In this document: positions 3,863 through 62,194 of the stretch, one piece after another | How positions within the stretch are numbered: the stretch's first letter is position 1 | Layout of the letters: every line of letters begins with the position of its first letter | NCBI RefSeq assembly: GCF_020745735.1 | Contig: NW_026867509.1 | Coordinates: 806,001-870,000, forward strand | Direction of reading: 5' to 3' | Length of the DNA stretch: 64,000 nucleotides | Source: Hemiscyllium ocellatum | Taxonomy: Eukaryota | The notes under the pieces: generated by a model | What the model was told of the DNA's origin: nothing | Databases searched by the model: none | Seen by the model: the letters and a program-made list of their open reading frames with translations, nothing else | Program-made: the position numbers and the translations under genes

Positions 3863-4789
3863 ATGGCAGTGCAGAGAGGGCAATGTTCCTCTTGCAACAT
3901 GTATGAGGTGAGGGAAGCCATCAGCGTCCCTGCTGAGTACACTTGCAAGAAGTGCAACCATCTCCAGCTCCTCCAAACCCGTGTTAGGGAACTGGAGCTG
4001 GAGTTGGATGAACTGCGGATCATTCGGGAGGCAGAGGAGGTCATAGATCGGAGCTATAGGCAAGTAGTTACTCCGAAAGTTCAAGATAGATGGGTGACAG
4101 TGAGGGGGAGTGGGAGGAGGAAGCCAGTGCAGGGACCCCCTGCGGTCATTCCCCTCAAGAACAAGTATACCGTTTTGGATACTTGTGGGGGGGATGACTT
4201 ACCAGGGGCAAGCAACGAGGTTCAGGCCTCTGGCACGGAGCCTGGCCCCGTTGCTCAGAAGGGAAGGGTGGAGAAAGGTAGAGCGATAGTTCTTGGGGAC
4301 TCGATAGTGAGGGGTACAGACAGACGGTTTTGTGGGGGCGACAGGGACTCACGTTTGGTATGTTGCCTCCCAGGTGCAAGGGTACGTGATGTCGCTGATC
4401 GTGTTTTCCGGGTCCTTAAGGGGGAGGGGGAGCAGCCCCAGATCGTGGTCCACGTTGGCACCAACGATATAGGTAGGAAGAAGGGTGAGGATGTAAGGCA
4501 GGCTTTCAGGGAGCTAGGTTGGAAGCTCAGAGTTAGAACAAACAGAGTTGTAGTCTCTGGTTTGTTACCCGTGCCACGTGATAGAGAGTCGAGGAACAGG
4601 GAGAGAGAGCAGTTAAATGCGTGGCTACAGGGATGGTGCAGGAGGGAGGGATTCCGGTTTCTGGATAACTGGGGTCCTTTCTGGGGAAGGTGGGACCTCT
4701 ATAAAAAGGATGGTCTACACTTGAACCTGAGGGGCACCAGTATCCTTGGGGGGAGGTTTGCTAGTGCTCTTTGGGAGGGTTTAAACTAA
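3863..4789 (+). CDS. CR1 ORF1p: N-terminal zinc finger, coiled coil, SGNH/GDSL esterase-like domain (308 aa)
   Basis: CSSC..CKKC zinc finger, LELELDELR coiled coil, VLGDSIVRG, HVGTNDIG and DGLHL esterase motifs; ATG start; no stops. Confidence 0.93.
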   Translation: MAVQRGQCSSCNMYEVREAISVPAEYTCKKCNHLQLLQTRVRELELELDELRIIREAEEVIDRSYRQVVTPKVQDRWVTVRGSGRRKPVQGPPAVIPLKNKYTVLDTCGGDDLPGASNEVQASGTEPGPVAQKGRVEKGRAIVLGDSIVRGTDRRFCGGDRDSRLVCCLPGARVRDVADRVFRVLKGEGEQPQIVVHVGTNDIGRKKGEDVRQAFRELGWKLRVRTNRVVVSGLLPVPRDRESRNREREQLNAWLQGWCRREGFRFLDNWGPFWGRWDLYKKDGLHLNLRGTSILGGRFASALWEGLN

Positions 4790-7674
4790 CTCCGCGGGGG
4801 CATGGGAACCAGGACTGTAGCTTTAGGGTACAGGACCTTGAGTGTAGGGAGGTTAGGAATAATGCAGCGATCTCTAAGGAGGGTGACTGTAACCAGAAAG
4901 GTGGATTGAAGTGTGTATACTTCAATGCCAGAAGTATAAGGAATAAGGTAGGTGAACTTGCAGCGTGGGTTGGTACCTGGGACTTCGATGTTGTGGCCAT
5001 TACAGAGACGTGGGTAGAACAGGGACAAGAATGGCTGTTGCACGTTCCAGGGTTCAAATGTTTTAGTAGGATCAGACATGGGGGTAAAAAAGGGGGAGGC
5101 GTGGCATTACTTGTCAAAGACAGTATCACAGCAGTGGAATGGACGATGGAAGAGGACTTGCCATCTGAGGTAGTTTGGGCTGAGGTTAGAAATAGGAAAG
5201 GTGAGGTCACCCTGTTAGGTGTTTTCTACAGGCCTCCTAATAGTCCTAGAGAAGTAGAGGATAATATTGCGAGGATGATTCAGGAAAAGAGTGAAGGTAG
5301 CAGGGTGGTTGTTATGGGGGACTTTAACTTCCCAGATATTGACTGGGAGAGCTATAGCTCGAGTTCATTAGATGGGTCGGTGTTTGTACAATGTGTGCAG
5401 GAGGGTTTCCTGACACAATATGTCGACAGGCCAACAAGAGGGGAGGCTATATTGGATTTGGTTCTAGGTAATGAACCAGGCCAGGTGTTGGACTTGGAGG
5501 TAGGTGAGCACTTCGGGGACAGTGACCACAACTCGGTGACTTTTACTTTAGTGATGGAGAGGGATAATCGTGTGCCGCAGGGCAAGAGCTATAGCTGGGG
5601 GCAGGGAAATTATGATGCAGTGAGGCATGACTTAGGAGGTGTGGATTGGAAAAACAGGCTTCAAGAGAAGAACACTAATGAGATGTGGGGAGTGTTCAAG
5701 GAGCAGCTACTGCGTGTCCTCGATAGGTATGTACCAGTCAGGCATGGTGTAAAGGGCCTTGTGAGGCAGCCGTGGTTTAGTAAGGAATTGGAGTCCCTTG
5801 TGAAAGGGAAGAAGGCGGCATATGTAAAGATGAGGCGTGAAGGTTCAGTAGGGGCGATTGAGAGTTATAAGGTAGCCAGGAAGGAGCTAAAGAGGGAGTT
5901 AAGAAAAGCGAGAAGGGGACATGAAAAGTCTTTAGCTGGTAGGATTAGGGAAAACCCAAAGGCTTTCTATAGGTATGTCAAGAATAAAAGGATGACTAGG
6001 GTAGGTATCGGTCCAGTCAAGGATAGTAGTGGGAAGTTGTGTGTGGAGGCGGAGGAGATTGGAGAGACATTAAATCAGTACTTTTCATCAGTATTCACTC
6101 AGGAACAGGACACTGTTGCTGATGTGAATATGGAATCACAAATAATTAGAATGGATGCCCTGGAAATATGCAGGGAAGAGGTTTTGGGAATATTGGAAAG
6201 GAAGAATATAGATAAGTCTCCTGGGCCTGATGGCATTTACCCCAGGATCCTATGGGAAGCTAGGGAGGAGATAGCAGAGCCATTGGCCTGGATTTTTATG
6301 TCATCGTTGTCAACAGGAATAGTACCAGAGGACTGGAGGATAGCGAATGTGGTCCCATTGTTCAAGAAAGGGAGTAGGGATAGCCCTAGCAACTATAGGC
6401 CAGTGAGTCTGACTTCAGTGGTGGGCAAAGTCTTAGAGAGAATGGTAAGGGATAAGATTTATGAACATCTGGGTAGGAATAACGTGATCAGGGATAGCCA
6501 GCATGGTTTTGTGAAGGGCAGGTCGTGCCTCACAAACCTTATTGAGTTCTTTGAGAAGGTGACCAAGGAAGTGGATGAGGGTAAAGCAGTAGATGTTGTG
6601 TATATGGATTTTAGTAAGGCGTTCGATAAGGTTCCCCATGGTAGGCTAATGCTAAAACTTCGGAGGTATGGCATTGAGGATACATTAGAGGTTTGGATTA
6701 GGAATTGGCTGGCTGGAAGGAGACAGAGGGTAGTAGTTGATGGATTATGTTCATCTTGGAGCGCAGTTACTAGCGGTGTACCACAAGGATCTGTTTTGGG
6801 ACCATTGCTTTTTGTTATCTTTATAAATGATCTAGAGGAAGGACTTGAAAGCTGGGTAAGCAAGTTTGCGGATGACACAAAAGTCGGTGGAGTTGTGGAT
6901 AGTGAGGAAGGAAGTGGTAGGTTACAGCGGGATATAGATAAGTTGCAGAGCTGGGCGGAAATGTGGCAAATGGAATTCAATGTAGCTAAGTGCGAAGTCG
7001 TTCACTTTGGTAGGAATAACAAGATGATGGATTACTGGGCTAATGGTAGGCTACTTGGTAGTGTGGATGAGCAGAGGGATCTTGGTGTCCATGTACACAG
7101 ATCTCTGAAAGTTGCCACCCAGGTAAATAGTGCTGTGAGGAAGGCATATGGTGTACTGGGCTTTATTGGCAGAGGAATTGAGTTCCGGAGTCCTGAGGTC
7201 ATGTTGCAGTTGTATAAGACTCTGGTGCGGCCTCATCTGGAGTATTGTGTGCAGTTTTGGTCGCCATACTATAGGAAGGATGTGGAAGCTTTAGAACGAG
7301 TGCAGAGGAGGTTTACCAGGATGTTGCCTGGAATGGTAGGAAAATCTTATGAGGAAAGGCTGAGGCACTTGGGGCTGTTCTCATTGGAGAAGAGAAGGTT
7401 TAGGGGAGATCTGATAGAAGTGTATAAGATGATTAGGGGTTTAGATAGGGTAGATACTAAGAACCTTTTACCGCTAATGGAGTCAGGTGTTACTAGGGGA
7501 CATAGCTTTAAATTAAGGGGTGGTAGGTATAGGACAGATGTTAGGGGTAGATTCTTCACACAGCGGGTTGTGAGTTCATGGAATGCCCTGCCCGTATCAG
7601 TGGTGAACTCTCCTTCTTTATGGTCATTTAAGCGGGCATTGGATAGGCATTTGGAAGTTATTGGGCTAGTATAG
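4771..7674 (+). CDS. CR1 ORF2p: APE endonuclease plus reverse transcriptase (967 codons, no early AUG)
   Basis: YFNARSI, GDFNFPD, SDHN (APE); PGPDG, QHGF, DFSKAFD, GVPQGSVLGPLLF, KFADD (RT); CR1-type C-terminus (RGHSFKL..GRFFTQRVV). Confidence 0.95.
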   Translation: MGGFKLTPRGHGNQDCSFRVQDLECREVRNNAAISKEGDCNQKGGLKCVYFNARSIRNKVGELAAWVGTWDFDVVAITETWVEQGQEWLLHVPGFKCFSRIRHGGKKGGGVALLVKDSITAVEWTMEEDLPSEVVWAEVRNRKGEVTLLGVFYRPPNSPREVEDNIARMIQEKSEGSRVVVMGDFNFPDIDWESYSSSSLDGSVFVQCVQEGFLTQYVDRPTRGEAILDLVLGNEPGQVLDLEVGEHFGDSDHNSVTFTLVMERDNRVPQGKSYSWGQGNYDAVRHDLGGVDWKNRLQEKNTNEMWGVFKEQLLRVLDRYVPVRHGVKGLVRQPWFSKELESLVKGKKAAYVKMRREGSVGAIESYKVARKELKRELRKARRGHEKSLAGRIRENPKAFYRYVKNKRMTRVGIGPVKDSSGKLCVEAEEIGETLNQYFSSVFTQEQDTVADVNMESQIIRMDALEICREEVLGILERKNIDKSPGPDGIYPRILWEAREEIAEPLAWIFMSSLSTGIVPEDWRIANVVPLFKKGSRDSPSNYRPVSLTSVVGKVLERMVRDKIYEHLGRNNVIRDSQHGFVKGRSCLTNLIEFFEKVTKEVDEGKAVDVVYMDFSKAFDKVPHGRLMLKLRRYGIEDTLEVWIRNWLAGRRQRVVVDGLCSSWSAVTSGVPQGSVLGPLLFVIFINDLEEGLESWVSKFADDTKVGGVVDSEEGSGRLQRDIDKLQSWAEMWQMEFNVAKCEVVHFGRNNKMMDYWANGRLLGSVDEQRDLGVHVHRSLKVATQVNSAVRKAYGVLGFIGRGIEFRSPEVMLQLYKTLVRPHLEYCVQFWSPYYRKDVEALERVQRRFTRMLPGMVGKSYEERLRHLGLFSLEKRRFRGDLIEVYKMIRGLDRVDTKNLLPLMESGVTRGHSFKLRGGRYRTDVRGRFFTQRVVSSWNALPVSVVNSPSLWSFKRALDRHLEVIGLV

Positions 7675-7762
7675 GTTAGGTAGGATTCGGTCGGCGCAAC
7701 ATCGAGGGCCGAAGGGCCTGTACTGCGCTGTATCCTTCTATGTTCTATGTTCTATGTTCTAG

Positions 7763-8839
7763 ATGCTAAATGAATATTTTGCCTCGGTAATTACTGTGAT
7801 AAAGGATATGGAAGATATAGACGGTAGGGAAATAGATGGTGAAAGCTTGCAAAATGTCCAGATTACAGAGGAGGAAGTTCTAGATGTCTTGAAAAAGGTA
7901 AAGGTGGATAGATCCCCAGGACCCGATCAGATGTACCCGAGAACTCTATGGGAAGTTAGAGAAGTGATTGCTGGGCCTCTTGCTGAAATATTTGTATCAT
8001 CGATAGTCACAGGTGAGGTGCCAGAAGACTGGAGGTTGACAAATGTGGTGCCACTGTTTAAGAAGGGCGGTAAAGACAAGCCAGGGAACCATGGAGAGGT
8101 GAGCCTGACCTCGGTGGTGGGCAAGTTGTTGGAGGGAATCCTGAGGGACAGGATGTATATATACTTGGAAAAGCAAGGACTGGTTAGGAATAGTCAACAT
8201 GATCTTGTGCGTGGGAAATCATGTCTCAAAAACTTGATTGAGTTTTTTGAAGAATTAACAACGAGGATTGATGAGGGCAGAGCAGTAGATTGAGCAATAT
8301 GGACTTAAGTAAGGCGTTCGACAAAGTTCCCTATGGGAGACTGATTATCAAGGTTAGATCTCAAAGAATACAGGGAGAACTAGCGATTTGGATACAGAAC
8401 TGGCTCAAAGGTAGACGACAGAGGGTGGTGGTGGAGGGTTGTTTTTCAGACTGGAGGCCTGTGACCAGTGGAGTGCCACAAGGATCGGTGCTGGGTCCTC
8501 TACTGTTTGTCATTTATATATATGATTTGGATGCGAGCATAAGAGGTACAGTTAGTAAGTTTGCAAATGACACCAAAATTGGTGATGTAGTGGACAGCCA
8601 AGAGGGTTACCTCAGATTACAACAGGGTCTGAATCAGATGGGCCAATGGGCTGAGAAGTGGCAGATGGCGTTTAATTCAGATAAATGCGAGGTGCTGTAT
8701 TTTTGGAAAGCAAATCTTACCAGGACTTAAACACTTAATGGTAAGTTCCTAGAGAGCGTTGTGGAACAAAGAGATCTTGGAGTGGAGGTTCATAGCTCCT
8801 TGAAAGTGGAGTTGCAGGTAGAGAGTATAGTGAAGAAGG
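7763..8839 (+). mobile_element. Old CR1 LINE, part 2 (RT), decayed
   Basis: LNEYFASV, SPGPDQ, DLSKAFDKVP, GVPQGSVLGPLLF, KFANDTK with frameshifts. Confidence 0.9.
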
Positions 8840-19522: not shown

Positions 19523-20612
19523 AAATACGGAGGTAGGGCATTGAGGGTGCGTTAGAGGTTTGAATCAGGAATTGGCTGGCTGGAAGAAGACAGAGGGTAG
19601 TAGTTGATGGTAAAGGTTCATCTTTGAGTGCAGTTACTACCGGTTTTCGGCAAGGATCTGTTTTGGGATCATTCCTGTTTGTCATTTTCATAAATGACCT
19701 GGAGGAGGGGCTAGAAGGTTGGGTGAGCAAGTTTGCGGATGATACAAAAGTCGGTGGAGTTGTTGACAGTGACGAATGATGTGGCAGGTTACAGCGGGAT
19801 ATAGATAAGCTGTAGAGCTGGGCAGAAAGGTGGCAAATGGAGTTCAATGTAGGGAAATGTGAAGTGATTCACTTTGGTAAGAGGAACAAGAAGGTGGAGC
19901 ACTGGGCTAATGGTCGGATACTTGGTAGTGTGGATGAGCAGAGGGATCTTGGTGTCCATGTACACAGATCTCTGAAAGTTGCCATTCAGGTAAATAGTGC
20001 TGTGAAGAAGGCATATGGCTTTTATTGGTAGAGGAATTGAGTTCCGGAGTCCTGAGGTCATGTTGCAGTTGTATAAGTTTCTGGTGCGGCCGCATCTGGA
20101 GTATTACGTGCAGTTTTGGTCGCCATACCATAGGAAGGATGTGGAGGCATTGGAACCGGGTGCAGAGGAGGTTTATCAAAATGTTGTCTGGTATGGTAGG
20201 AAGATCATATGAGGAAAGGCTGAGGCACTTGGGGCTGTTTTCATTGGAGAAAAGAAGGTTTAAGAGTGACTTGACAGAGGTGTACAAGATGATTAGGGGT
20301 TTAGATAGGGTTGACCATGAGAACCTTTTTCCATGTATGGAGTCAGCTATTACGAGGGGGCATAGCTTTAAATTAAGGGGAGGTAGGTGTAGCGCAGATG
20401 TTAGGGGTAGATTCTTTACTCAGCGAGTCGTGAGTCCATGGAATGTCCTGCCAGTAACAGTAGTGGACTCTCCCTCTTTATGGGCATTTAAACGGGCATT
20501 GGATAGGCATATGGAGGATAATGGGCTAGTGGAGGTTAAGTTGGCTTGGGTCGGCGCAACATCGAGGGTCGAAGGGTCTGTACTGCGCTGTATTTTTCTA
20601 TGTTCTATGTTA
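19523..20612 (+). mobile_element. 5'-truncated CR1 of the same subfamily as the intact copy
   Basis: Long near-identical stretches to 6660-7760 (for example gatcttggtgtccatgtacacagatctctgaaagttgcc), several stops, ttctatgttctatg tail. Confidence 0.92.
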
Positions 20613-21329
20613 ATATCCAATGCCCTCTCTAGTATCTGAATTAAAACTGTCTGTAGCCTCTTCTAGGCTTTTCATCCATAAACATATGGCTCATTGTGTG
20701 AAAAAGAGCTTATGTCATCCTTTTTTGCAATGCTTCTTCCGGAATATTACAAGATTAGAATATCATTTTATTGTCACGTGCACATTGCAAGAGTACAGTG
20801 AAAATCATTTGCAATGGCTGTCTTCCTATGACGAAATATTAGGGGTACACGTTTTCAGTACAAATCTTTAATACAACAGTCAAATACAAGTAATTGCATT
20901 ATTATACCAAGTTGAAGAACACGTTTAAAAATATAAGTAGACATTATGTCACAACAGCTCACCACAGTGTCTCTGTATGTGGTTGGACCTAACGCACCAG
21001 ATCTCAGTCCACCATCCACCAGCAATCCTCGCTCTGCTCTAAGCCACAGTTCATTACATATCGGCATTGAACTGTTCCAGAGTAATTCATGGACTGCTTC
21101 CTCCGTACCAGTGTCTGCCTGTGACTCACTGCCCATACAGTGCTCTGTGGCTGGTTGCTGGCGTGCTCCTGTAGGACTGCTTCCACGTACTGTTCTGTTC
21201 CCCTGCTTCAAAACCGACAAACCTTACGCAGTTCCAGAGATCGTGGCCCATTTGCCGCTTCGGGGCTATTGGTTCATACTGTTCTCTGGGGCTAGTGGCC
21301 CACGTACTGTTAAATCTGTGTCTGCTGGC

Positions 21330-22528: not shown

Positions 22529-22571
22529 ATGGGAGCTATACTTGTCCTTTTACTGTGTACCTATACACTCG
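22529..22571 (+). CDS. NARTCRV: NAR-TCR V leader exon (MGAILVLLLCTYTL + G)
   Basis: ATG, hydrophobic 14 codons, phase-1 donor G|gttagt. Confidence 0.9.
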
Positions 22572-22703
22572 GTTAGTACGGATCCAACAATCCAACATGG
22601 TGCACAATTAGTACAAAGCTTCCCGAATCCATGAAAAAAAAATCGGCATTGCCTCTGGTTCAGTTCCTTTGTGCGGACTAATATCTCTCCGTTTAATTTC
22701 CAG

Positions 22704-22991
22704 AATCCTTTTGTCAGTCAGTGGTACAGTCCCCACCAGCGGACATCAAGAAAGAGTGCCAGTCTTTCAGCATCGACTGCGTTTTCTACGGTGGCTTCTT
22801 TGCACGTCCTTTAGAGCGGGGGGAGTTCTTCAAACAAACAGAGACTGGAGCAAAACGAGAGCGGATCTTGTCAGGAGGACGGTTTGTTGTGAGGACGAAC
22901 ACAGCAGAAAAGACATTTTCGCTGCAGGTTCAGGATGTGAATGTTAAAGACACTGCCACATATTATTGTAAAGCCTGGTATAGAGATAGCA
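22704..22991 (+). CDS. NARTCRV: NAR-TCR variable exon (IgNAR-like V domain), intact
   Basis: tttccag| acceptor in phase with the leader; ESFCQSVVQSPPADIKKECQSFSIDCVFYGGFFARPLERGEFFKQTETGAKRERILSGGRFVVRTNTAEKTFSLQVQDVNVKDTATYYCKAWYRDS. VNAR-type deleted CDR2 (RERI..GGRF), YYCKA, extra FR1 Cys. Confidence 0.93.
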
Positions 22992-23030
22992 CACAGTGAT
23001 TTGACCCGGCCTCCCACCATACCAAAAAAC
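22992..23030 (+). other. 23-RSS of NAR-TCR V
   Basis: cacagtg - 23 nt - ccaaaaaac. Confidence 0.92.
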
Positions 23031-23345: not shown

Positions 23346-23373
23346 AGATTTGATGCTGACTAGAAACATTGTG
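23346..23373 (-). other. 5' 12-RSS of NAR-TCR D
   Basis: agatttgat - 12 nt - cattgtg; heptamer 6/7, nonamer weak (5/9). Confidence 0.7.
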
Positions 23374-23388
23374 TGACTACTGGGATTA
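23374..23388 (+). other. NARTCRD: NAR-TCR D segment (tgactactgggatta; frames *LLGL, DYWD, TTGI)
   Basis: 15 nt flanked by facing heptamers, midway between V and J. Confidence 0.88.
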
Positions 23389-23416
23389 CACGGTGAATGA
23401 GACCTAAACAAATATC
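23389..23416 (+). other. 3' 12-RSS of NAR-TCR D
   Basis: cacggtg - aatgagacctaa (12 nt) - acaaatatc. Confidence 0.88.
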
Positions 23417-23725: not shown

Positions 23726-23766
23726 AGTTTTTCTGCAAAGGTGTGACCGAGAACCTTGTCACTGTG
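23726..23766 (-). other. Long-spacer (23-class) RSS of NAR-TCR J
   Basis: Perfect cactgtg at 23760-23766. The T-tract nonamer is at 23-25 nt (tttttctgc at 23 nt; agtttttct at 25 nt); there is no nonamer at 12 nt. Confidence 0.78.
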
Positions 23767-23819
23767 GTACTCCGACGAAGCAGTGGATGGATCCGGGACA
23801 ATGGTGACTGTCACAGCTG
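23767..23819 (+). CDS. NARTCRJ: NAR-TCR J segment (YSDEAVDGSGTMVTVTA + G)
   Basis: GxGT-x-VTV J motif, phase-1 donor G|gtaagt, in phase with the acceptor at 28654. Confidence 0.92.
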
Positions 23820-25049
23820 GTAAGTGAATTCAAAACAGACCGTGTTCAACACTGTGCAGGAAACTACTTACTGTAGTTGTATTCTTGTGATCTATATTCC
23901 CTCAACATAACTTCATTTAAAATAAACATTTTTCTAAGGTAAGTTTTCATTGCAATTTTAGATCTGAGAGCAGAATTAGCAGTATGAGTCAGGGCTGAGA
24001 GTAAAACCCGAGACAAGAGACAATAGGTTTGGTTGACCTGATCTGTATCATTCTTATTAAAAAAAAAGACATAAGATAATGCAAGCATAATCCCAGTCTC
24101 TCACTCTCAATGTTAATTGTTATAAATGGATTCAGGTTATCAAACTGCTAAGCCCCAAGCCCACATGTTGAATTGGATGTTACTGCGAACAAAGTAGCTG
24201 TCTTATGTGCAAAGGATTTTTGTCTGATCCTGGCAATGGGAATGAGGAATCAGGAAAGAGCACCTTGTTGTACAATGATTTGTCTGAGACCTGGAGTGGC
24301 ACAAAGCCGAGAACATGTTAGAGCAGGCTACAGATTTCCTAGATTTAGTCCTGGCAGAATTTTACAATTGGGCAGTCAGTGACTGAATTTAATTTTATCC
24401 TTTCTGATGTTTCTTTCTGTTGCCTAAATATTCGCATTAATTTCATCCCTTGCCTCCCTTAGAAAGAAACGAATAACTTCAGGCACCCACCCATCGTAAA
24501 TGTTAATATTTGAAATGCTGATGGTGGCTCTTTTCGACTGGGATCTCGAATTTCCTGGCAAAGCACGAACAACCAAATTAGAAACGAATGCAACTTTCCC
24601 TTTGTGTTCAACTTTTCAATTCATAGAAAGCAGACAATCAACGCAGTATTTAACAGTTTGACTCGAATCTAGATAATGACTGATTTTGATAAACTGGCTC
24701 GTTTCAATCTGATAATTCATGGTCTTTTCTGACTTTCGCACTCAAGGACCCCTCCAAGTGATGTCTGGTTTTAAGATGTTGCCCGATTTGTCACTGTAGA
24801 CGTCTCCAAAGTCCTTCTTTAATAACGACATTTTTTTCCAGGTTGATTTCATGCCACCCTTGAACAACCCTCTTATACAACTGAACTCGTTAATTTAACA
24901 GTCGTGGAAACAAGAGACATAACTATCCACTGTCTGTTGAGTCAGTCTAAATGCAGAGGCGAAGTAACCTTTAATATCAGTGGGTTGCTAAGGCCTTGTG
25001 TTTCGTTTTGCTTCTTCCTTTCACAGTAAGCGGATCTATTTTTCGATCA

Positions 25050-27700: not shown

Positions 27701-28653
27701 TGAACAGTGTGAACAGAGCAGATAGTGTCAAACTGCTCCAATTGGTGGAAAGCTCCAGAACTGAAACAAACACATTGAATAGATAAAAGAATCAATGACG
27801 ACTTAAGCAAAATGAATTTAATTTCAATGTTTGTGATGTATAATGTAATTCCTGAGACTGCAAGAAAGGCAAACTTGGCCAAGGTGTTCTAGAGGAAATT
27901 GCATAATTATCTAAGAAGGAAGTGTGTGTCAGCCGCTGGCAGAGAGTGGGAAGTGGTAGTCGTTGAATTCCTCATTCAGAGACACAGTATGTGCACGTCA
28001 GACCGAATGATCTTCTGCTGTGCCAGTACTGTTCTTAATTATCTTCCCGAATACTGTGGCCTACAGATACTTACCGTTCATCTAGGTCAATAACTGCTGA
28101 TGAGTTTTATGACGTTCTGTTGGATCTTACTGACCATAAAGATGTAACATGGCGGGGGTAATTGTCTGTTATGTAAATCTGCAGAGTGAACATCTGAGTG
28201 AAGAGGAGCATGAACTATTTTTTTTTCCCAGATGTACATTTAACAGAAATACAGAAGAAGATTTTTAATAAAATCGATTGAAGCAGACAACACAGTATCG
28301 GTAGTGCATGTGTAGATTCTTCAAATAAAACCAATTCCTCCCATTCTGTAGTTTTTGCCCGTTCTCCTGGGATCCTTCCCTGTTGCAGTTCATTTGCAAA
28401 CTCCGTTTGAAATTTAGTCTTAATTCTGAATTCTTATCATGCATTCTGATGTTTGAATCTGGTAATAACAACGCACTCTGCCAACAGCAAGAAATTGCAG
28501 CATCTGGATATTAATTTGTTAATTATGATGAAGACCGTGTCAAAGCTGTGTTAAATTAAGAAAAAATCTCTTAATGACAGAAATGTTTGCACGATTTCCA
28601 GGTTTCCAGCACAACCAGTGCTCTAAAACCTTTTTTCTTAATATGTTCTCCAG

Positions 28654-28963
28654 ATTCCCCGTCCCTGGTGTCTCACAGCCCTACTGTCAAAACCTCAGTT
28701 GCAGTTGACACCATTACTTTAAGCTGTAAATATTCAGGATTCTGTCAGTACACAGTTTACTGGTACCGTCATGCCCCAGGACAGGCTCTGGAATACCTGC
28801 TTCAGAGATACACTTCAGGACAGCAGAATAACAAAAATGCAGCTGGAGGAAGAATTTCTGCTGATATTGACTCTGCAGCGAAAATTACTCGTTTATATAT
28901 CGCCACAATACAACAAAGTGACTCTGCTGTGTATTACTGTGCACTGAGTCGGCGCTCAGCATA
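28654..28963 (+). CDS. TRDV: Leaderless supporting TCR-delta V exon for NAR-TCR, intact
   Basis: ttctccag| acceptor; DSPSLVSHSPTVKTSVAVDTITLSCKYSGFCQYTVYWYRHAPGQALEYLLQRYTSGQQNNKNAAGGRISADIDSAAKITRLYIATIQQSDSAVYYCALSRRSA. Canonical C/W/YYC plus a CDR1 Cys; I found no leader exon nearby upstream. Confidence 0.93.
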
Positions 28964-29002
28964 CACTATGATCCAAATGACGGAGAGAACTGTACAAAAA
29001 CG
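28964..29002 (+). other. 23-RSS no.1 of supporting V
   Basis: cactatg - 23 nt - acaaaaacg. Confidence 0.9.
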
Positions 29003-29023
29003 TAACCAGACTAACGATTAGGA

Positions 29024-29062
29024 CACAGTGACACAGAACACAGACAGAGCTGTACAAAAACC
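29024..29062 (+). other. 23-RSS no.2 (perfect consensus), 60 bp downstream of no.1
   Basis: cacagtg - acacagaacacagacagagctgt (23 nt) - acaaaaacc. Confidence 0.92.
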
Positions 29063-29084
29063 TGAACGTCCTGACGATTGCAGC

Positions 29085-29123
29085 AACAGCAATACAGAGA
29101 ACAGAGACAGCTGTACAAACAAA
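29085..29123 (+). other. Degenerate 23-RSS no.3
   Basis: aacagca - 23 nt - acaaacaaa; the invariant CAC is lost, so it is probably inactive. Confidence 0.65.
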
Positions 29124-31959
29124 TGAAGTGGTTTGCAGTTGAGGGATATGGGAAACTTGAAATCTCGGACTGCAGCATAGAAACTTCATTCATTGTGTGG
29201 TAATCCATCGTACAGAATGGAAAGATTATAATTTTATGAATGAGTTTGTGATTTCCTGAAAATTAATTTTAGATATTACTTTCTACATTTTTCAATACTT
29301 GTCTTAGAAAACTGGTACTTGGGGAAGATGGTTTGTTCTCTTCTACGCAGGGAGAGAATAGAGAAAGCAGATTCAATGAACACTTACAGATTTTTTTTCA
29401 AATTTGTGGAGTTCTGGAGAAGCAGAAAGAGTCCGGGTAACACTGCTCTAGATAGCAGTGATAATAACAACATGGCAAATGCATGAATATTTGATTTTAA
29501 ATTTGTATTTACATTTTTGGAGAGAAATAACTCCCAGTTAGACAAGTACTTTCTAGCAAGATTTTATGTGAATGCATAAACTGTGTTTCTTAATGTTCAC
29601 AGAAAAATCAGATGAAAACGATAGATTCAGTTCAGCTGAGTTTCCATCATCAACAACTAACCATTTCCTTTTATTACTTTAATTGTCATGGAAGGTGTAT
29701 TCTTCCTTCAAGGGAGTAGATTTTTCCACTTCACCTTAATTTGAATTTAGAAGTTAATTTTATTTTGTCATATTTTATTCCTTGAATAAAATAACTTTGG
29801 TTAGTTTGAGGTTTTACACCATCATGATAAACTGCTCAGAAGACTCAACTGTCAGTTAGATTCTGTTTGTGCAGGTTCTGTTGTGGTTTTACTGTTACTC
29901 ACTAGCATGTGCAACTTCTACGTCCTGGAAAACTTAAATTCCCGAAAAAAATTTTCCTGATTCTGTCCGGTGCTCCACGAAACTCCACGAGTTTTACATT
30001 ATGTACAATGCTCAGGACAGGGGTGGGCGAATCAACTGTCAACTGGAGAATGACAGAACTTTGTACTCTACAATAAAGGTTCACCGCTCTAACCACAGCA
30101 AACCAGTTTCACCAAGGCATTGTGCTCTTCTCTTCCGTTCTCCCCCTTGTAATTTTTCTAAAATTGACATCACCTCCACGAACTCCATGCAATCGACTGT
30201 CAATGAGGTCTGATGTGATTCGGTAACAAAAATATTTCTTCTCGAGCTGTGCTGTTATTGAACTGATGGATTGGTCGTTCTTTATTCTTCACCAATCCAC
30301 TAAATAAGGAATTTCTAATCCTGCCTCTTTGAACACACGCGGAATTTGAATTTTTTTTATAATATCAGCTCTTCATTCCCGGTGTTACAGTTCTTATGGA
30401 CGAGAGGAGAGCACGTAAAAATATCTTAAGAAGGGTGCCAAGACCCTAACATTTTCTTATTGTAAAAATAGATGCGAACTCATTGTTCCAGATATGATGA
30501 GACTGATGAAATAACACAACATTAAACAAAACACAACTAATTTATGTCATGAAGTTAAAATGCAAACAAAAGAAAACATTATTTAGAATAACTTAACGAG
30601 TGAAAAACATAACCGCTTAATACATAAAGTACAATTTCCTAACTAATTGTTCGAACACAGTAACTACCATAACAGTTCCCTGGAAAGACGGCATTCGAGA
30701 AAAGCATTCCTGCTGGAGCTCTTCTACCCCGCCTATTCTTTCTCTTTCCTTCGGTTAGTTTTCTCTGTTTTTTTCTTGTTCTCCCTTGAACCCCAAAACC
30801 GAATCGTTTTGCAGCAGCAGGCATGCGTCACAAGTACCAGAGCAACGAGGCCTGACAGAGAATCTGGTTTGCAAGCTCTAAATTATCGTTGTAGGTAGCA
30901 ACGACACAGAATCCCTGGAGCAGCGCAGGGATGCAAGTCTCTGATCATCACGTGAGCTGTGAGACCTAGAGCAGCACGGGAGGTCGCCTCGGTCACGTGA
31001 GTATTAGCGAGATCTGGACCGAGACTGGCATGGGGAAAGCAATACTTGAACTTACCTTGGAGCAACTGAGTGCCAGAATGGAGCGGACTGGAGGCTTGCA
31101 GTGGAGTATAGACGGCTGGTAGATTAGAATCAACGTGGATGCGCTATGCTGAGGTGCAACGATGTCATGTGTATTTATAATGTCTTATCTTGCTGTAATG
31201 TCAAACCTTTAAATATGTTCTTTTTTCGATCTTAGTTTTAAACTCTGTAAAGTAATGCAACTACTTGTATACCTCTGTTGTATGCAAGATTTCTACCAAG
31301 GTACTTGTACTTAAGATGTCGCCTTCAGAAGGCAGATAGTTAAAAACATTTTCACTAAATTCTTGCAAAGGATTGCATGTTACAATAACGAATATGCTAT
31401 TCTATTCTATTTTGTTACATTAAGTTCTGATTTATTACATTGTATTCTCAACACACCTCTTGGCAAAGAGGTCAATTCAAAGACAGTTTTTTTTTCATGT
31501 ACTTCTCCAATACAAGAGGGAACAACATCAAGAGAGATTTCACAAAAAGTAGCAACTCAGAATTATTCACTGAAGCGTCCAGCTCTTCTGGGAATACAAT
31601 CAGCTTCTGACTGCTCAAGCTGAAAATATCGAAGTAACCCTGATTACTTACTGCATGAATACTGATTACTTCAGCACAGATCAGACATAAACCAGGCTCT
31701 CAGACTCCTCGTTAAGTACAACAGGCACCTCTACAAACAGTTATTAACTCACCATCACAAGTTACTATCACAACTGCCTTTTCTGTCGCTGATGCTTCTG
31801 TTTTCTTTGATGAGTCGAAACTCATTTGTATTTCTCACTGCATGATTACATTTTGTTTCCTGTACACCGACGCTAACTTTTCCTGTTTTACGAAATGACA
31901 TGAAAGTTACTTATTTCCTTTTGCTTAACTTTGCTCCTGTTGTTAACTTCAGCGTTAAA

Positions 31960-47601: not shown

Positions 47602-48218
47602 ATGTCCATGATTATTAGTTACTCGTTCTTCACTGCTGCAGCTCTCCTTACTGGTAAGTTCCCCAAAATGTAAGAAAGCACATTTGCAGATGAAAATGGC
47701 ATATTGTTCTTTAATTGCGCACTAGCTCCATTTGCAACAGGCTCTGCTACATTGATTGTGAAATTTAACAGTAAAAACATAAGATTTTTCGGATATAAAT
47801 TCCAGCAGGTGTTATTTGTTTAGATTACTTACAGTGTGGAAACAGGCCCCTCGGCTCAACAAGTCCACACTGACCCGCCGAAGCGCAACCCACTCATACC
47901 CCTACATTTACCCCTTAATTTTATGGACTGGGTTTCACAGGAGCCAGTTGCAGAGACACAGATGAAAGGAAACTCGGCGACAATTCATTTCAAATAATCG
48001 ATCTCTTCTGCTTTCTGTTCTGAACAACTGTACCATCAGGATGGTGGACAATCTTCCACATTCGTGATTTACATACCAAAGTCAGGAGACGTTTTTAAAG
48101 CAGAAGACGTTGTTGATTGATTTTCTGCAGTTCTGGACACTTCAAAAAGCGAGGGAAATTTCACCGTCGATGAGCTGCAGCTGTCTGACAGCGCTGTTTA
48201 TTACTGCGGGCTGAGAGA
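47602..48218 (+). pseudogene. TCR alpha/delta-type V pseudogene (leader 47602-47653; V exon with SINE insertion, two stops, first Cys lost)
   Basis: Leader MSMIISYSFFTAAALLT+G|gtaag; MDWVSQEPVAETQMKGNSATIHFK*SISSAFCSEQLYHQDGGQSSTFVIYIPKSGDVFKAEDVVD*FSAVLDTSKSEGNFTVDELQLSDSAVYYCGLR. Confidence 0.88.
47821..47915 (-). mobile_element. Short SINE/CR1-tail fragment inserted at the start of the V exon
   Basis: tagattacttacagtgtggaaacaggcccctcggctcaacaagtccacactgaccc, the same tail family as 17071 and 18710. Confidence 0.8.
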
Positions 48219-48256
48219 CACGGTGACAGAAACAGGGGGAGACTTGTACAAAACTA
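48219..48256 (+). other. 23-class RSS (22-nt spacer)
   Basis: cacggtg - 22 nt - acaaaacta. Confidence 0.8.
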
Positions 48257-52719: not shown

Positions 52720-53410
52720 TTGTCATGTTTTTCTTTCTCTCTGTGTCTCTCTCTCCCTCCACCCTCCATCTCTCTTTATGTTTCTGCTTTTCTCTATCCC
52801 TCTCTGTCAGTCAATGTTAGTCTCCTTCAATTTGTGTTTTTCCCATTCTGACCAGTAGAATGCTACATTCCCTTTTCAGTGCATTTTATTTTTCACGCTT
52901 TTTCCATTACCTTTTTTCTTCTAGGTACATTCTCATTCTCTCCGTGTTTCTTTGTCTATCTCCCTTTATATAAATTGAAATTTGGTTCTCTTTTCACGGT
53001 ATTCTCGGGCTCTATACTTCTTTATTTTTCTCTCTCCCTATTGCTCTTTAGTTTTCACTGTCACACCAATTCTGTTCCATGTGATGTTGCATTCTTCCTT
53101 TATCTCCTTCCTTGCCTCTGCCTTTCACATCTGTACTTCAGATTTTCACTCTCCCTCTCTCCGTTTTACTTGACCTTTGGCTACACTTTGATCTCTACTA
53201 TGTATTGTGTTATGACCGTGTCTCTGTTCCTCTCTTTTGTTTTTTGTCACTTCTTCATTCTTCACATCATTCGAGCCTCCCTTTGTTTTCCTCCCCAAAT
53301 CATGATGCTTTCCCACCTGTTTTTTGTCTTCCTCTCGACATTGTGGTCTGTGGAGGTGAAGCAATCTATCCAGTTCTGCTGTTTTACTGCTACCTTTCTG
53401 ATGTTCTGAT
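52720..53410 (+). repeat. Long pyrimidine-rich low-complexity tract
   Basis: About 700 bp dominated by T and C runs on the + strand. Confidence 0.7.

Positions 53411-61022: not shown

Positions 61023-61082
<60 letters not shown>
61023..61082. repeat. (AG)30 microsatellite
   Basis: Uninterrupted AG run. Confidence 0.95.
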
Positions 61083-61084
<2 letters not shown>

Positions 61085-62194
61085 GAGACAAACCAGCGAT
61101 GTTTGTCTCGTCTCAGATATAGGGCACCATTTAAAACAGCATTACGAGAGTTCCATGCAGTCGATACATTCTAACAATGGTTCCTCTGGGATCTTAATGC
61201 TATTTACTCGCCAGTTTTCGTGAGGTTTCTTGAGGTGAAGTTATCATCAGGAATATTCACATTATACATACTTTAAAAGTAACAGCGCTCTTGTAAAGTT
61301 ATTAGTTATTTATCAGAATTGCAGGCTTACAGGTTAATCCGATTTATTTTGTCAACAAATTCCGTCCACGACCCCTTCCGCATCATCTTCGAAACTCACA
61401 AACTCTCCAATTCAGGACAAAGAATCAAAGTTACCTGAGCAACAGAAGCTTCAAAATCCAGGCCAAAGCATACATACCATTCCGAGTTTGAACTTCATAA
61501 TGATTATTGCACATCCGCCAATTGAAAATCCTAGCCGTCCCTTCTTAATATCATTGGGGTGCACACTCACTAGACTGACAGTCGGTGGCATCGTGGCAAC
61601 GTCAGTGGCTTGCAATCCAGCTGCTCAGATTATGTCTTACTGTTCATGGATCCCATCATTCCATCTGGAGGTATTTGGGCGTGAACTTCTCATAATATGT
61701 AGTTAGAGCCTTGTGATTGGAAATGCCAAGATACTCCCATTAGTGTGTTTTGAACAATATATTGTGTCACTTCAGTGAATTCGTTGGTCTGTTACTGAAA
61801 CACTGCTGCAATGAAGGCAAATTTGGAAAATCCAACTGATTCCTTCATCCAAACATGGATACAGGGTAATTGGCCAAATGTTAAATGAACAATTCCTTGA
61901 ATATTTTAGCTAGTTAGACAGATGTTTAATTAATAAGAGAGCCAAGGGATATAATAGTAAGGCAGTAAATGGATATTCAGATCATTAAATCATCCATAAT
62001 GCCAGTGAAAAGCAGAGTTCCAAATGGACTTAATGTCCAATAGCTTGCCCATACATCCCATACTTTATTGCTTTCTAACAGTTATTGATGAAATTCTGCT
62101 TGATGTTTATAGACATAGAAAGTTAACACTCTATGTCCCCACACAGTCACTGTAAACTGATTACATATGCATGTGAATAATCTTCATGCCACTG

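Follow-up and report, generated by a model that had tools for sequence, protein, structure and literature searches.

A germline tandem array of three 23-RSS units behind the supporting V-delta segment of a shark NAR-TCR cassette

V, D and J gene segments are normally described with one recombination signal (RSS) per side, and RAG cleaves at the border of the signal's heptamer. Embedded or cryptic RSSs are known to serve secondary rearrangement, as in the VH-replacement heptamer located in FR3 and the kappa RS/kappa-deleting element, and successive V-J replacement occurs at the TCR-alpha and Ig-kappa loci. In artificial competition substrates, two RSSs are placed in tandem and the strengths of the signals are ranked. 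Minisatellites are tandem repeats of 10-100 bp, and their copy number changes by slippage or unequal exchange.

We analysed a window of 64,000 nucleotides, the whole stretch of DNA under consideration here, in which a V segment is followed by three successive RSS units. The array is like the embedded RSS systems in that a signal surviving the first join, here RSS1 after a join at RSS2, could drive a nested join on the same allele. Unlike those systems, the retained element would be a complete 23-RSS located 3′ of the V segment and its use is a prediction; RSS1 would be kept only if an outer signal were used first, and that join is expected to be non-productive. As in the competition substrates, two signals of the same type and orientation lie about 60 bp apart and would compete for one partner, but this array is natural, carried in the germline and inherited across species. 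The period of about 60 bp and the head-to-tail arrangement of diverged units recall a minisatellite, except that the repeated unit is itself a recombination signal and each copy is a potential site of RAG cleavage.

The gene type is a known one. The NAR-TCR cassette of cartilaginous fish (Criscitiello, Saltis and Flajnik 2006, as summarised in PMC1845163 and PMC12227049) consists of a leader and NAR V, a D, a J with a splice donor and a leaderless V-delta with a CDR1 Cys. The cassette in the window has the same layout. In the papers that could be searched, a supporting V of a NAR-TCR is nowhere said to be followed by several RSSs in tandem. The array is presented as an uncommon arrangement of RSSs at a gene type that is already known, and an earlier description of it is possible.

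Reading of the sequence, the list of open reading frames and a scan for RSSs show that the + strand of the window carries an entire NAR-TCR cassette in germline form. The leader exon (22529-22571, +) extends from the ATG at 22529 to a gt splice donor at 22572, and the reading-frame list gives it as MGAILVLLLCTYTLG. The NAR-TCR V exon (22704-22991, +), identified from the same list and the sequence, matches the Pfam V-set family with an E-value of 1.9e-7; it lacks a Trp at the WYRK position and its a-b loop carries a Cys. The scan found a single 23-RSS directly behind it (22992-23030, +). The D segment (23374-23388, +) and its 3′ signal, a 12-RSS of the form CACGGTG/12/ACAAATATC (23389-23416, +), were both read from the sequence. 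On the 5′ side of D, positions 23346-23373 contain a good heptamer (cattgtg) and no convincing nonamer at 12 or 23 nt. The J segment (23767-23819, +) has its heptamer, cactgtg, at 23760-23766 and a gt splice donor at 23820. When translated by hand, this donor is in phase 1 and in frame with the supporting V exon, with TVTA followed by a split codon (g plus at) that encodes D and continues as SPSLVSH.

The leaderless supporting V-delta exon (28654-28963, +) lies about 4.8 kb downstream of the NAR-TCR J segment. It is preceded by a ccag splice acceptor (28650-28653), matches Pfam V-set with an E-value of 4e-13, carries a Cys in CDR1 (SGFCQYT) and ends in YYCALSRRSA. A protein search of a large protein collection returned no homologue of this exon. 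The NAR V and the supporting V of the window agree with the account of NAR-TcRV and the CDR1-Cys TcR-delta V in PMC1845163. The exon anatomy, the splice phase and the V-set match all bear out the original identification of this exon as a supporting V-delta that has no leader and carries the CDR1 Cys, and the NAR-TCR cassette to which it belongs is complete. We rejected the possibility that the long V end (CALSRRSA) represents a germline-joined D segment, because single-RSS paralogues share the CALSRRSA end up to 28960.

The scan showed that the other two V-type signals of the window are single. One belongs to the NAR V and the second follows a V fragment whose coding part ends at 48218. This fragment (47990-48256, +) comprises the 3′ half of a V segment (…DSAVYYCGLRD), has an in-frame stop upstream and carries one signal, CACGGTG/22/ACAAAACTA at 48219, and no array; it is probably a V pseudogene fragment. 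Two 12-RSS-like hits at 53319 and 62698 were rejected as J signals, as no J-like coding sequence adjoins them. Elsewhere in the window, the region at 2-8 kb has a strongly positive GC skew, which is accounted for by a + strand non-LTR retrotransposon (about 4400-8400) with endonuclease-like and reverse-transcriptase-like frames; its ..MDFSKAFDKVPHGRL.. motif, for instance, is found at both 6602 and 8297. Another LINE-like reading-frame fragment occupies 20025-20639 (+), and an (AG)n microsatellite of 32 copies is located at 61023-61088.

Directly 3′ of the supporting V-delta exon, the sequence of positions 28964-29123 (+) reads as three head-to-tail units of about 60 bp, each composed of a 23-spacer RSS and a linker of 21-22 nt, with no linker listed after RSS3. 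RSS1 (28964-29002, +) has the form CACTATG/23/ACAAAAACG, with its heptamer at 28964-28970 and its nonamer at 28994-29002. It abuts the V coding end and agrees with the consensus at 13/16 positions over the whole signal, including 8/9 in the nonamer. Linker 1 (29003-29023, +) is 21 nt long and contains a TAG at 29019-29021 in the V frame, where the open reading frame 28587-29021 stops. RSS2 (29024-29062, +), of the form CACAGTG/23/ACAAAAACC, sits 60 nt from the V end and is a perfect consensus signal (nonamer 9/9, whole signal 16/16), with its heptamer at 29024-29030 and its nonamer at 29054-29062. Linker 2 (29063-29084, +), also read from the sequence, has 22 nt. RSS3 (29085-29123, +), of the form AACAGCA/23/ACAAACAAA, has its heptamer at 29085-29091 and its nonamer at 29115-29123; it is without CAC, and its nonamer agrees with the consensus nonamer ACAAAAACC at 6/9 positions. 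All three spacers end in ctgt. The canonical 23-RSS is defined here by a CAC heptamer at the coding end, a spacer of 23 +/- 1 nt and an A-rich nonamer close to ACAAAAACC. The 23-nt spacer is present in all units and a CAC heptamer in RSS1 and RSS2 only, of which RSS1 alone abuts the V.

These readings agree with the three-unit anatomy that had been proposed, from heptamers, 23-nt spacers and nonamers to linkers and ctgt ends, and the outer RSS2 is indeed closer to consensus than the V-adjacent RSS1 (16/16 versus 13/16). Two other readings of the array were rejected on its sequence: the linkers are not D segments, having no suitably placed 5′ heptamer and nonamer, and the minus strand offers no properly placed heptamer and nonamer for a 12-RSS inside the array.

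The repeat statistics support an origin of the array by tandem duplication, as was originally proposed. The spacers of the three units are identical to one another at 15, 18 and 16 of 23 positions (shuffle p <= 1.5e-4), and the ungapped self-identity of 39/60 at offset 60 and 38/61 at offset 61 ranks in the top ~1e-4 of window positions. This self-identity is confined to about 28960-29130, with no fourth unit. The linkers, which the proposal also took as related, share only weak similarity (p 0.017-0.07). Tandem Repeats Finder, run on 28000-30000 and on the whole window with a score threshold of 30, did not report the array, because its units are only about 65% alike. A search of the rest of the window for the core motif of the array returned nothing besides one chance-level hit. 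The chance expectation of a perfect 23-RSS in the window is 3e-5.

The array is part of the germline of this species (species A below; B, C and D are other species). It is unchanged in a 224-nt short-read contig from another sample (S3; X4 record 23), which spans 28932-29155 with 0 differences, and across four samples from two studies of species A, 0.89-0.95 of the sampled words are present. The read evidence consists of assembled contigs of bulk DNA and so cannot show somatic joints.

Co-linear arrays are found in two related species. In species B, a 740-nt contig (X9 record 25) is co-linear over 28501-29204 with 42 substitutions, and its eight gap letters are made up of the inserted GATC and two deletions of 2 nt each, at 28636 and at 29044. 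The GATC is inserted at a GATC site (28969-28973) in run X9, and another contig ends in GATCGATC; the insertion is probably a Hi-C ligation junction rather than a real difference. Such junctions have apparently been carried into Logan contigs, and caution is needed when indels are read from such runs. In species C, three co-linear contigs span the array: Ca (568 nt), which is 92% identical and over 28958-29140 (183 nt) shows 14 differences but no gap; Cb (597 nt), which is about 17% different; and Cc (2392 nt), which is about 18% different. A second sample of species C contains both Ca-like and Cb-like contigs. Three-unit arrays are thus present in both related species, including at least two further loci in species C, and the unit number in the orthologues of species B and C is three. 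The co-linearity of these arrays indicates that the three-unit layout is older than the species split and at least one cassette duplication.

V paralogues that are at least 80% alike occur in all three species with one RSS (CACAGTG and a spacer starting ATACACAGTACGGAGAG), followed by unrelated sequence. The spacer of RSS1 is homologous to the spacer of this single RSS (..ACGGAGAGA..CTGT; loose contig ends at 28960 and 29067). The 22-mer AGAGCTGTACAAAAACCTGAAC at 29046-29067, which comprises the spacer end, the nonamer and 5 nt of flank of RSS2, is identical in RSS2, in unit 1 of Cb and in the single RSS of the paralogues of three species. From this comparison, the 22-mer reads as an unusually conserved extended signal motif of the V family that reaches past the nonamer.

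The individual signals have fared differently across these sequences. RSS1 agrees with the consensus at 13/16 positions in both A and B and at about 15/16 in Cb (CACTGTG, 23-nt spacer). In Ca its nonamer scores 8/9 and its heptamer is unreadable, as it lies near the end of the compared stretch, where differences within about 31 nt of the ends are unlisted. At 29002, a G>A change is listed for both species C contigs, yet the unit 1 piece of Cb implies an end of ...AACC. The RSS2 heptamer is CACAGTG in A, B, Ca and Cb. Its nonamer scores 9/9 in A and B, 8/9 in Ca (ACCAAAACC) and 7/9 in Cb (ACAAAAGCG), while its spacer measures 23 nt in A, Ca and Cb and 21 nt in B, where the 23-nt spacing has been lost. 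Decay of RSS2 in orthologues, which had been named at the outset as evidence that would speak against a retry device, is seen in part: the spacer of B and the nonamers of Ca and Cb have drifted. The heptamer has stayed perfect throughout. The RSS3 heptamer is AACAGCA in A, B and Ca and CACAGCA in Cb and Cc (29085 A>C), and its nonamer is poor in all the sequences compared; RSS3 is clearly decaying. The nine spacers of A, Ca and Cb are each exactly 23 nt long.

We compared the variability of the signal positions with that of their surroundings. Across A, B, Ca and Cb, variable sites number 5 of 32 in heptamers and nonamers and 18 of 83 in spacers and linkers (p 0.6); the comparative set comprises five sequences, so a rate test has little power. 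Units 1 and 2 are identical at 13/16 signal sites and at 31/40 of the remainder, a similar degree of divergence in both classes. Between units 2 and 3, the corresponding values are 11/16 for signal sites and 21/23 for the spacer, which puts the greater divergence, if there is a difference, at the signal sites (p 0.10). When polarised by sister units, the species A array carries about seven derived changes, all of them in spacers, linkers or the last position of nonamer 1, and the ancestral units are about 78% alike at non-signal sites. With this non-signal divergence of about 22%, the chance that RSS2 keeps its 16/16 match comes to 0.02-0.08 under a simple model of neutral drift, which is marginal; RSS2 may or may not be under selection.

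The original prediction held that a join at RSS2 leaves RSS1 intact in the coding joint and that the array is a built-in retry or editing device. The first part agrees with the known mechanism of RAG, since cleavage at the RSS2 heptamer would keep both RSS1 and linker 1 on the V side of the joint. The retained 60 nt read in the V frame as YTMIQMTERTVQKRNQTND, followed by the TAG at 29019-29021, which stops two bases short of the RSS2 heptamer. This TAG is kept in A, B and Ca. Because of it, a join that uses an outer signal first would be non-productive unless it is trimmed. In the read-through of unit 1, all four codons changed between A and Ca are non-synonymous, so the stretch is under no protein-level constraint and does not form a conserved coding extension. 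Furthermore, a normal V end is produced only by a cut at RSS1, so the array would add no canonical attempt; whatever the number of outer signals, we infer one. A second cut at RSS1 requires a 12-RSS remaining downstream, i.e. outside the window. No RNA run containing this sequence was found for species A, and in two RNA-like runs of species D the matches covered words of the V exon only, with nothing on the array. The idea of a retry device is left unsupported by the in-frame TAG, the single canonical attempt, the drifted outer signals and the absence of excess conservation at signal sites.

The array's anatomy, its tandem origin, its germline reality and its inheritance across species and paralogues are observations. 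Beyond these, the explanation that we favour, with moderate confidence, is that the array is a germline inherited RSS minisatellite that is nearly neutral, with RSS1 as the productive signal, RSS2 as a probable RAG competitor and RSS3 dead. A 23-RSS with about 21 bp of 3′ flank would have been tandemly duplicated to three copies behind the supporting V-delta, and RSS1, located at the coding end, would be the productive signal. Sequence 3′ of the used signal leaves on the excision circle; extra copies would therefore be cheap and could persist, drift and change in number. In species A, RSS2 would probably compete with RSS1 and be cut by RAG on some occasions. The resulting join would be longer by 60 bases, with the intact RSS1 and the in-frame TAG, and would mostly be a dead end, open to rescue by trimming or by a second cut at RSS1 and joining to a remaining downstream 12-RSS. 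RSS3 would be a fossil. The use of RSS1, the cleavability of RSS2 and the near-neutrality of the array are inferred.

Several of the measurements point to this minisatellite-like behaviour. The spacer of RSS1 matches that of the paralogues' single RSS. The outer copies drift, as seen in the RSS3 of A, B and Ca, which has no CAC where that of Cb and Cc does, the 21-nt RSS2 spacer in B and the altered nonamers of Ca and Cb. Heptamer and nonamer sites are as variable as spacers and linkers, and the in-frame stop is kept. However, three features are harder to accommodate. RSS2 is perfect at 16/16 despite the non-signal divergence of about 22%, for which the neutral probability is ~0.02-0.08. Every one of the nine spacers in A, Ca and Cb measures 23 nt, and Ca is free of indels over 183 nt. 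Lastly, a strong RSS2 that competes with a weaker RSS1 and has no use would be expected to do slight harm, yet it persists.

The same features form the case for selection on the stacked signals of the NAR-TCR supporting V, through nested sequential rearrangement or through better capture by RAG of a promoter-less V, which we consider unlikely. RSS2 matches the consensus fully in A and B and almost fully in Ca, the three-unit layout and the 23-nt spacing have been kept at several loci that are 8-18% diverged, and no locus lacks an excellent signal among its first two (RSS2 in A; RSS1, at 15/16, in Cb). Set against this, the unit retained by an outer-first join has a conserved in-frame TAG and is without amino-acid constraint, and the inferred single canonical attempt does not increase with the number of outer signals. 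Moreover, the RSS2 spacer of species B is 21 nt long, RSS3 is dead in 3/5 sequences and signal positions show no excess conservation. More broadly, it is improbable that stacked 23-RSS arrays have been conserved by selection as a trait of shark NAR-TCR supporting V-delta segments and that RAG uses their outer signals in vivo. If this were so, the outer signals would serve the capture of a promoter-less V or a nested, outer-then-inner rearrangement, on an allele that cannot change its V without losing the assembled NAR domain.

Far less probable is a role for RSS2 as the main working signal, with the RSS1 unit serving as a coding insert of about 19 residues in CDR3. By consensus RSS2 ranks first among the three signals, the 60-nt unit preserves the reading frame, and by hand translation unit 1 of Cb reads through with no stop. 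But A, B and Ca all retain the TAG (29019-29021) just two bases ahead of the RSS2 heptamer, the four codons that differ between A and Ca all change the amino acid, and the RSS1 unit has its homologue in the usual single RSS of V paralogues. An assembly artefact or a chance resemblance, for which the silence of Tandem Repeats Finder at a score threshold of 30 might speak, can be dismissed along with the notion of a single-cassette oddity, as the array is reproduced by independent contigs from another sample and two other species, with repeat statistics of p ~1e-4 and an expectation of 3e-5 perfect 23-RSSs in the window.

Whether nearly neutral or selected, a natural, heritable array of 23-RSSs in the same orientation, one of them a perfect consensus, is a ready-made competition substrate for RAG. 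For annotation, automated RSS finders will misplace the V boundary at such loci. The supporting V segment is under a particular constraint, as it must rearrange on an allele whose NAR V-D-J has already been assembled. Should the outer signals be unused, the array would show that recombination signals can act as ordinary minisatellite units, and it would reveal the speed at which redundant signals decay. If they are used, nested rearrangement and a choice between signals would be part of the biology of a primitive antigen-receptor locus.
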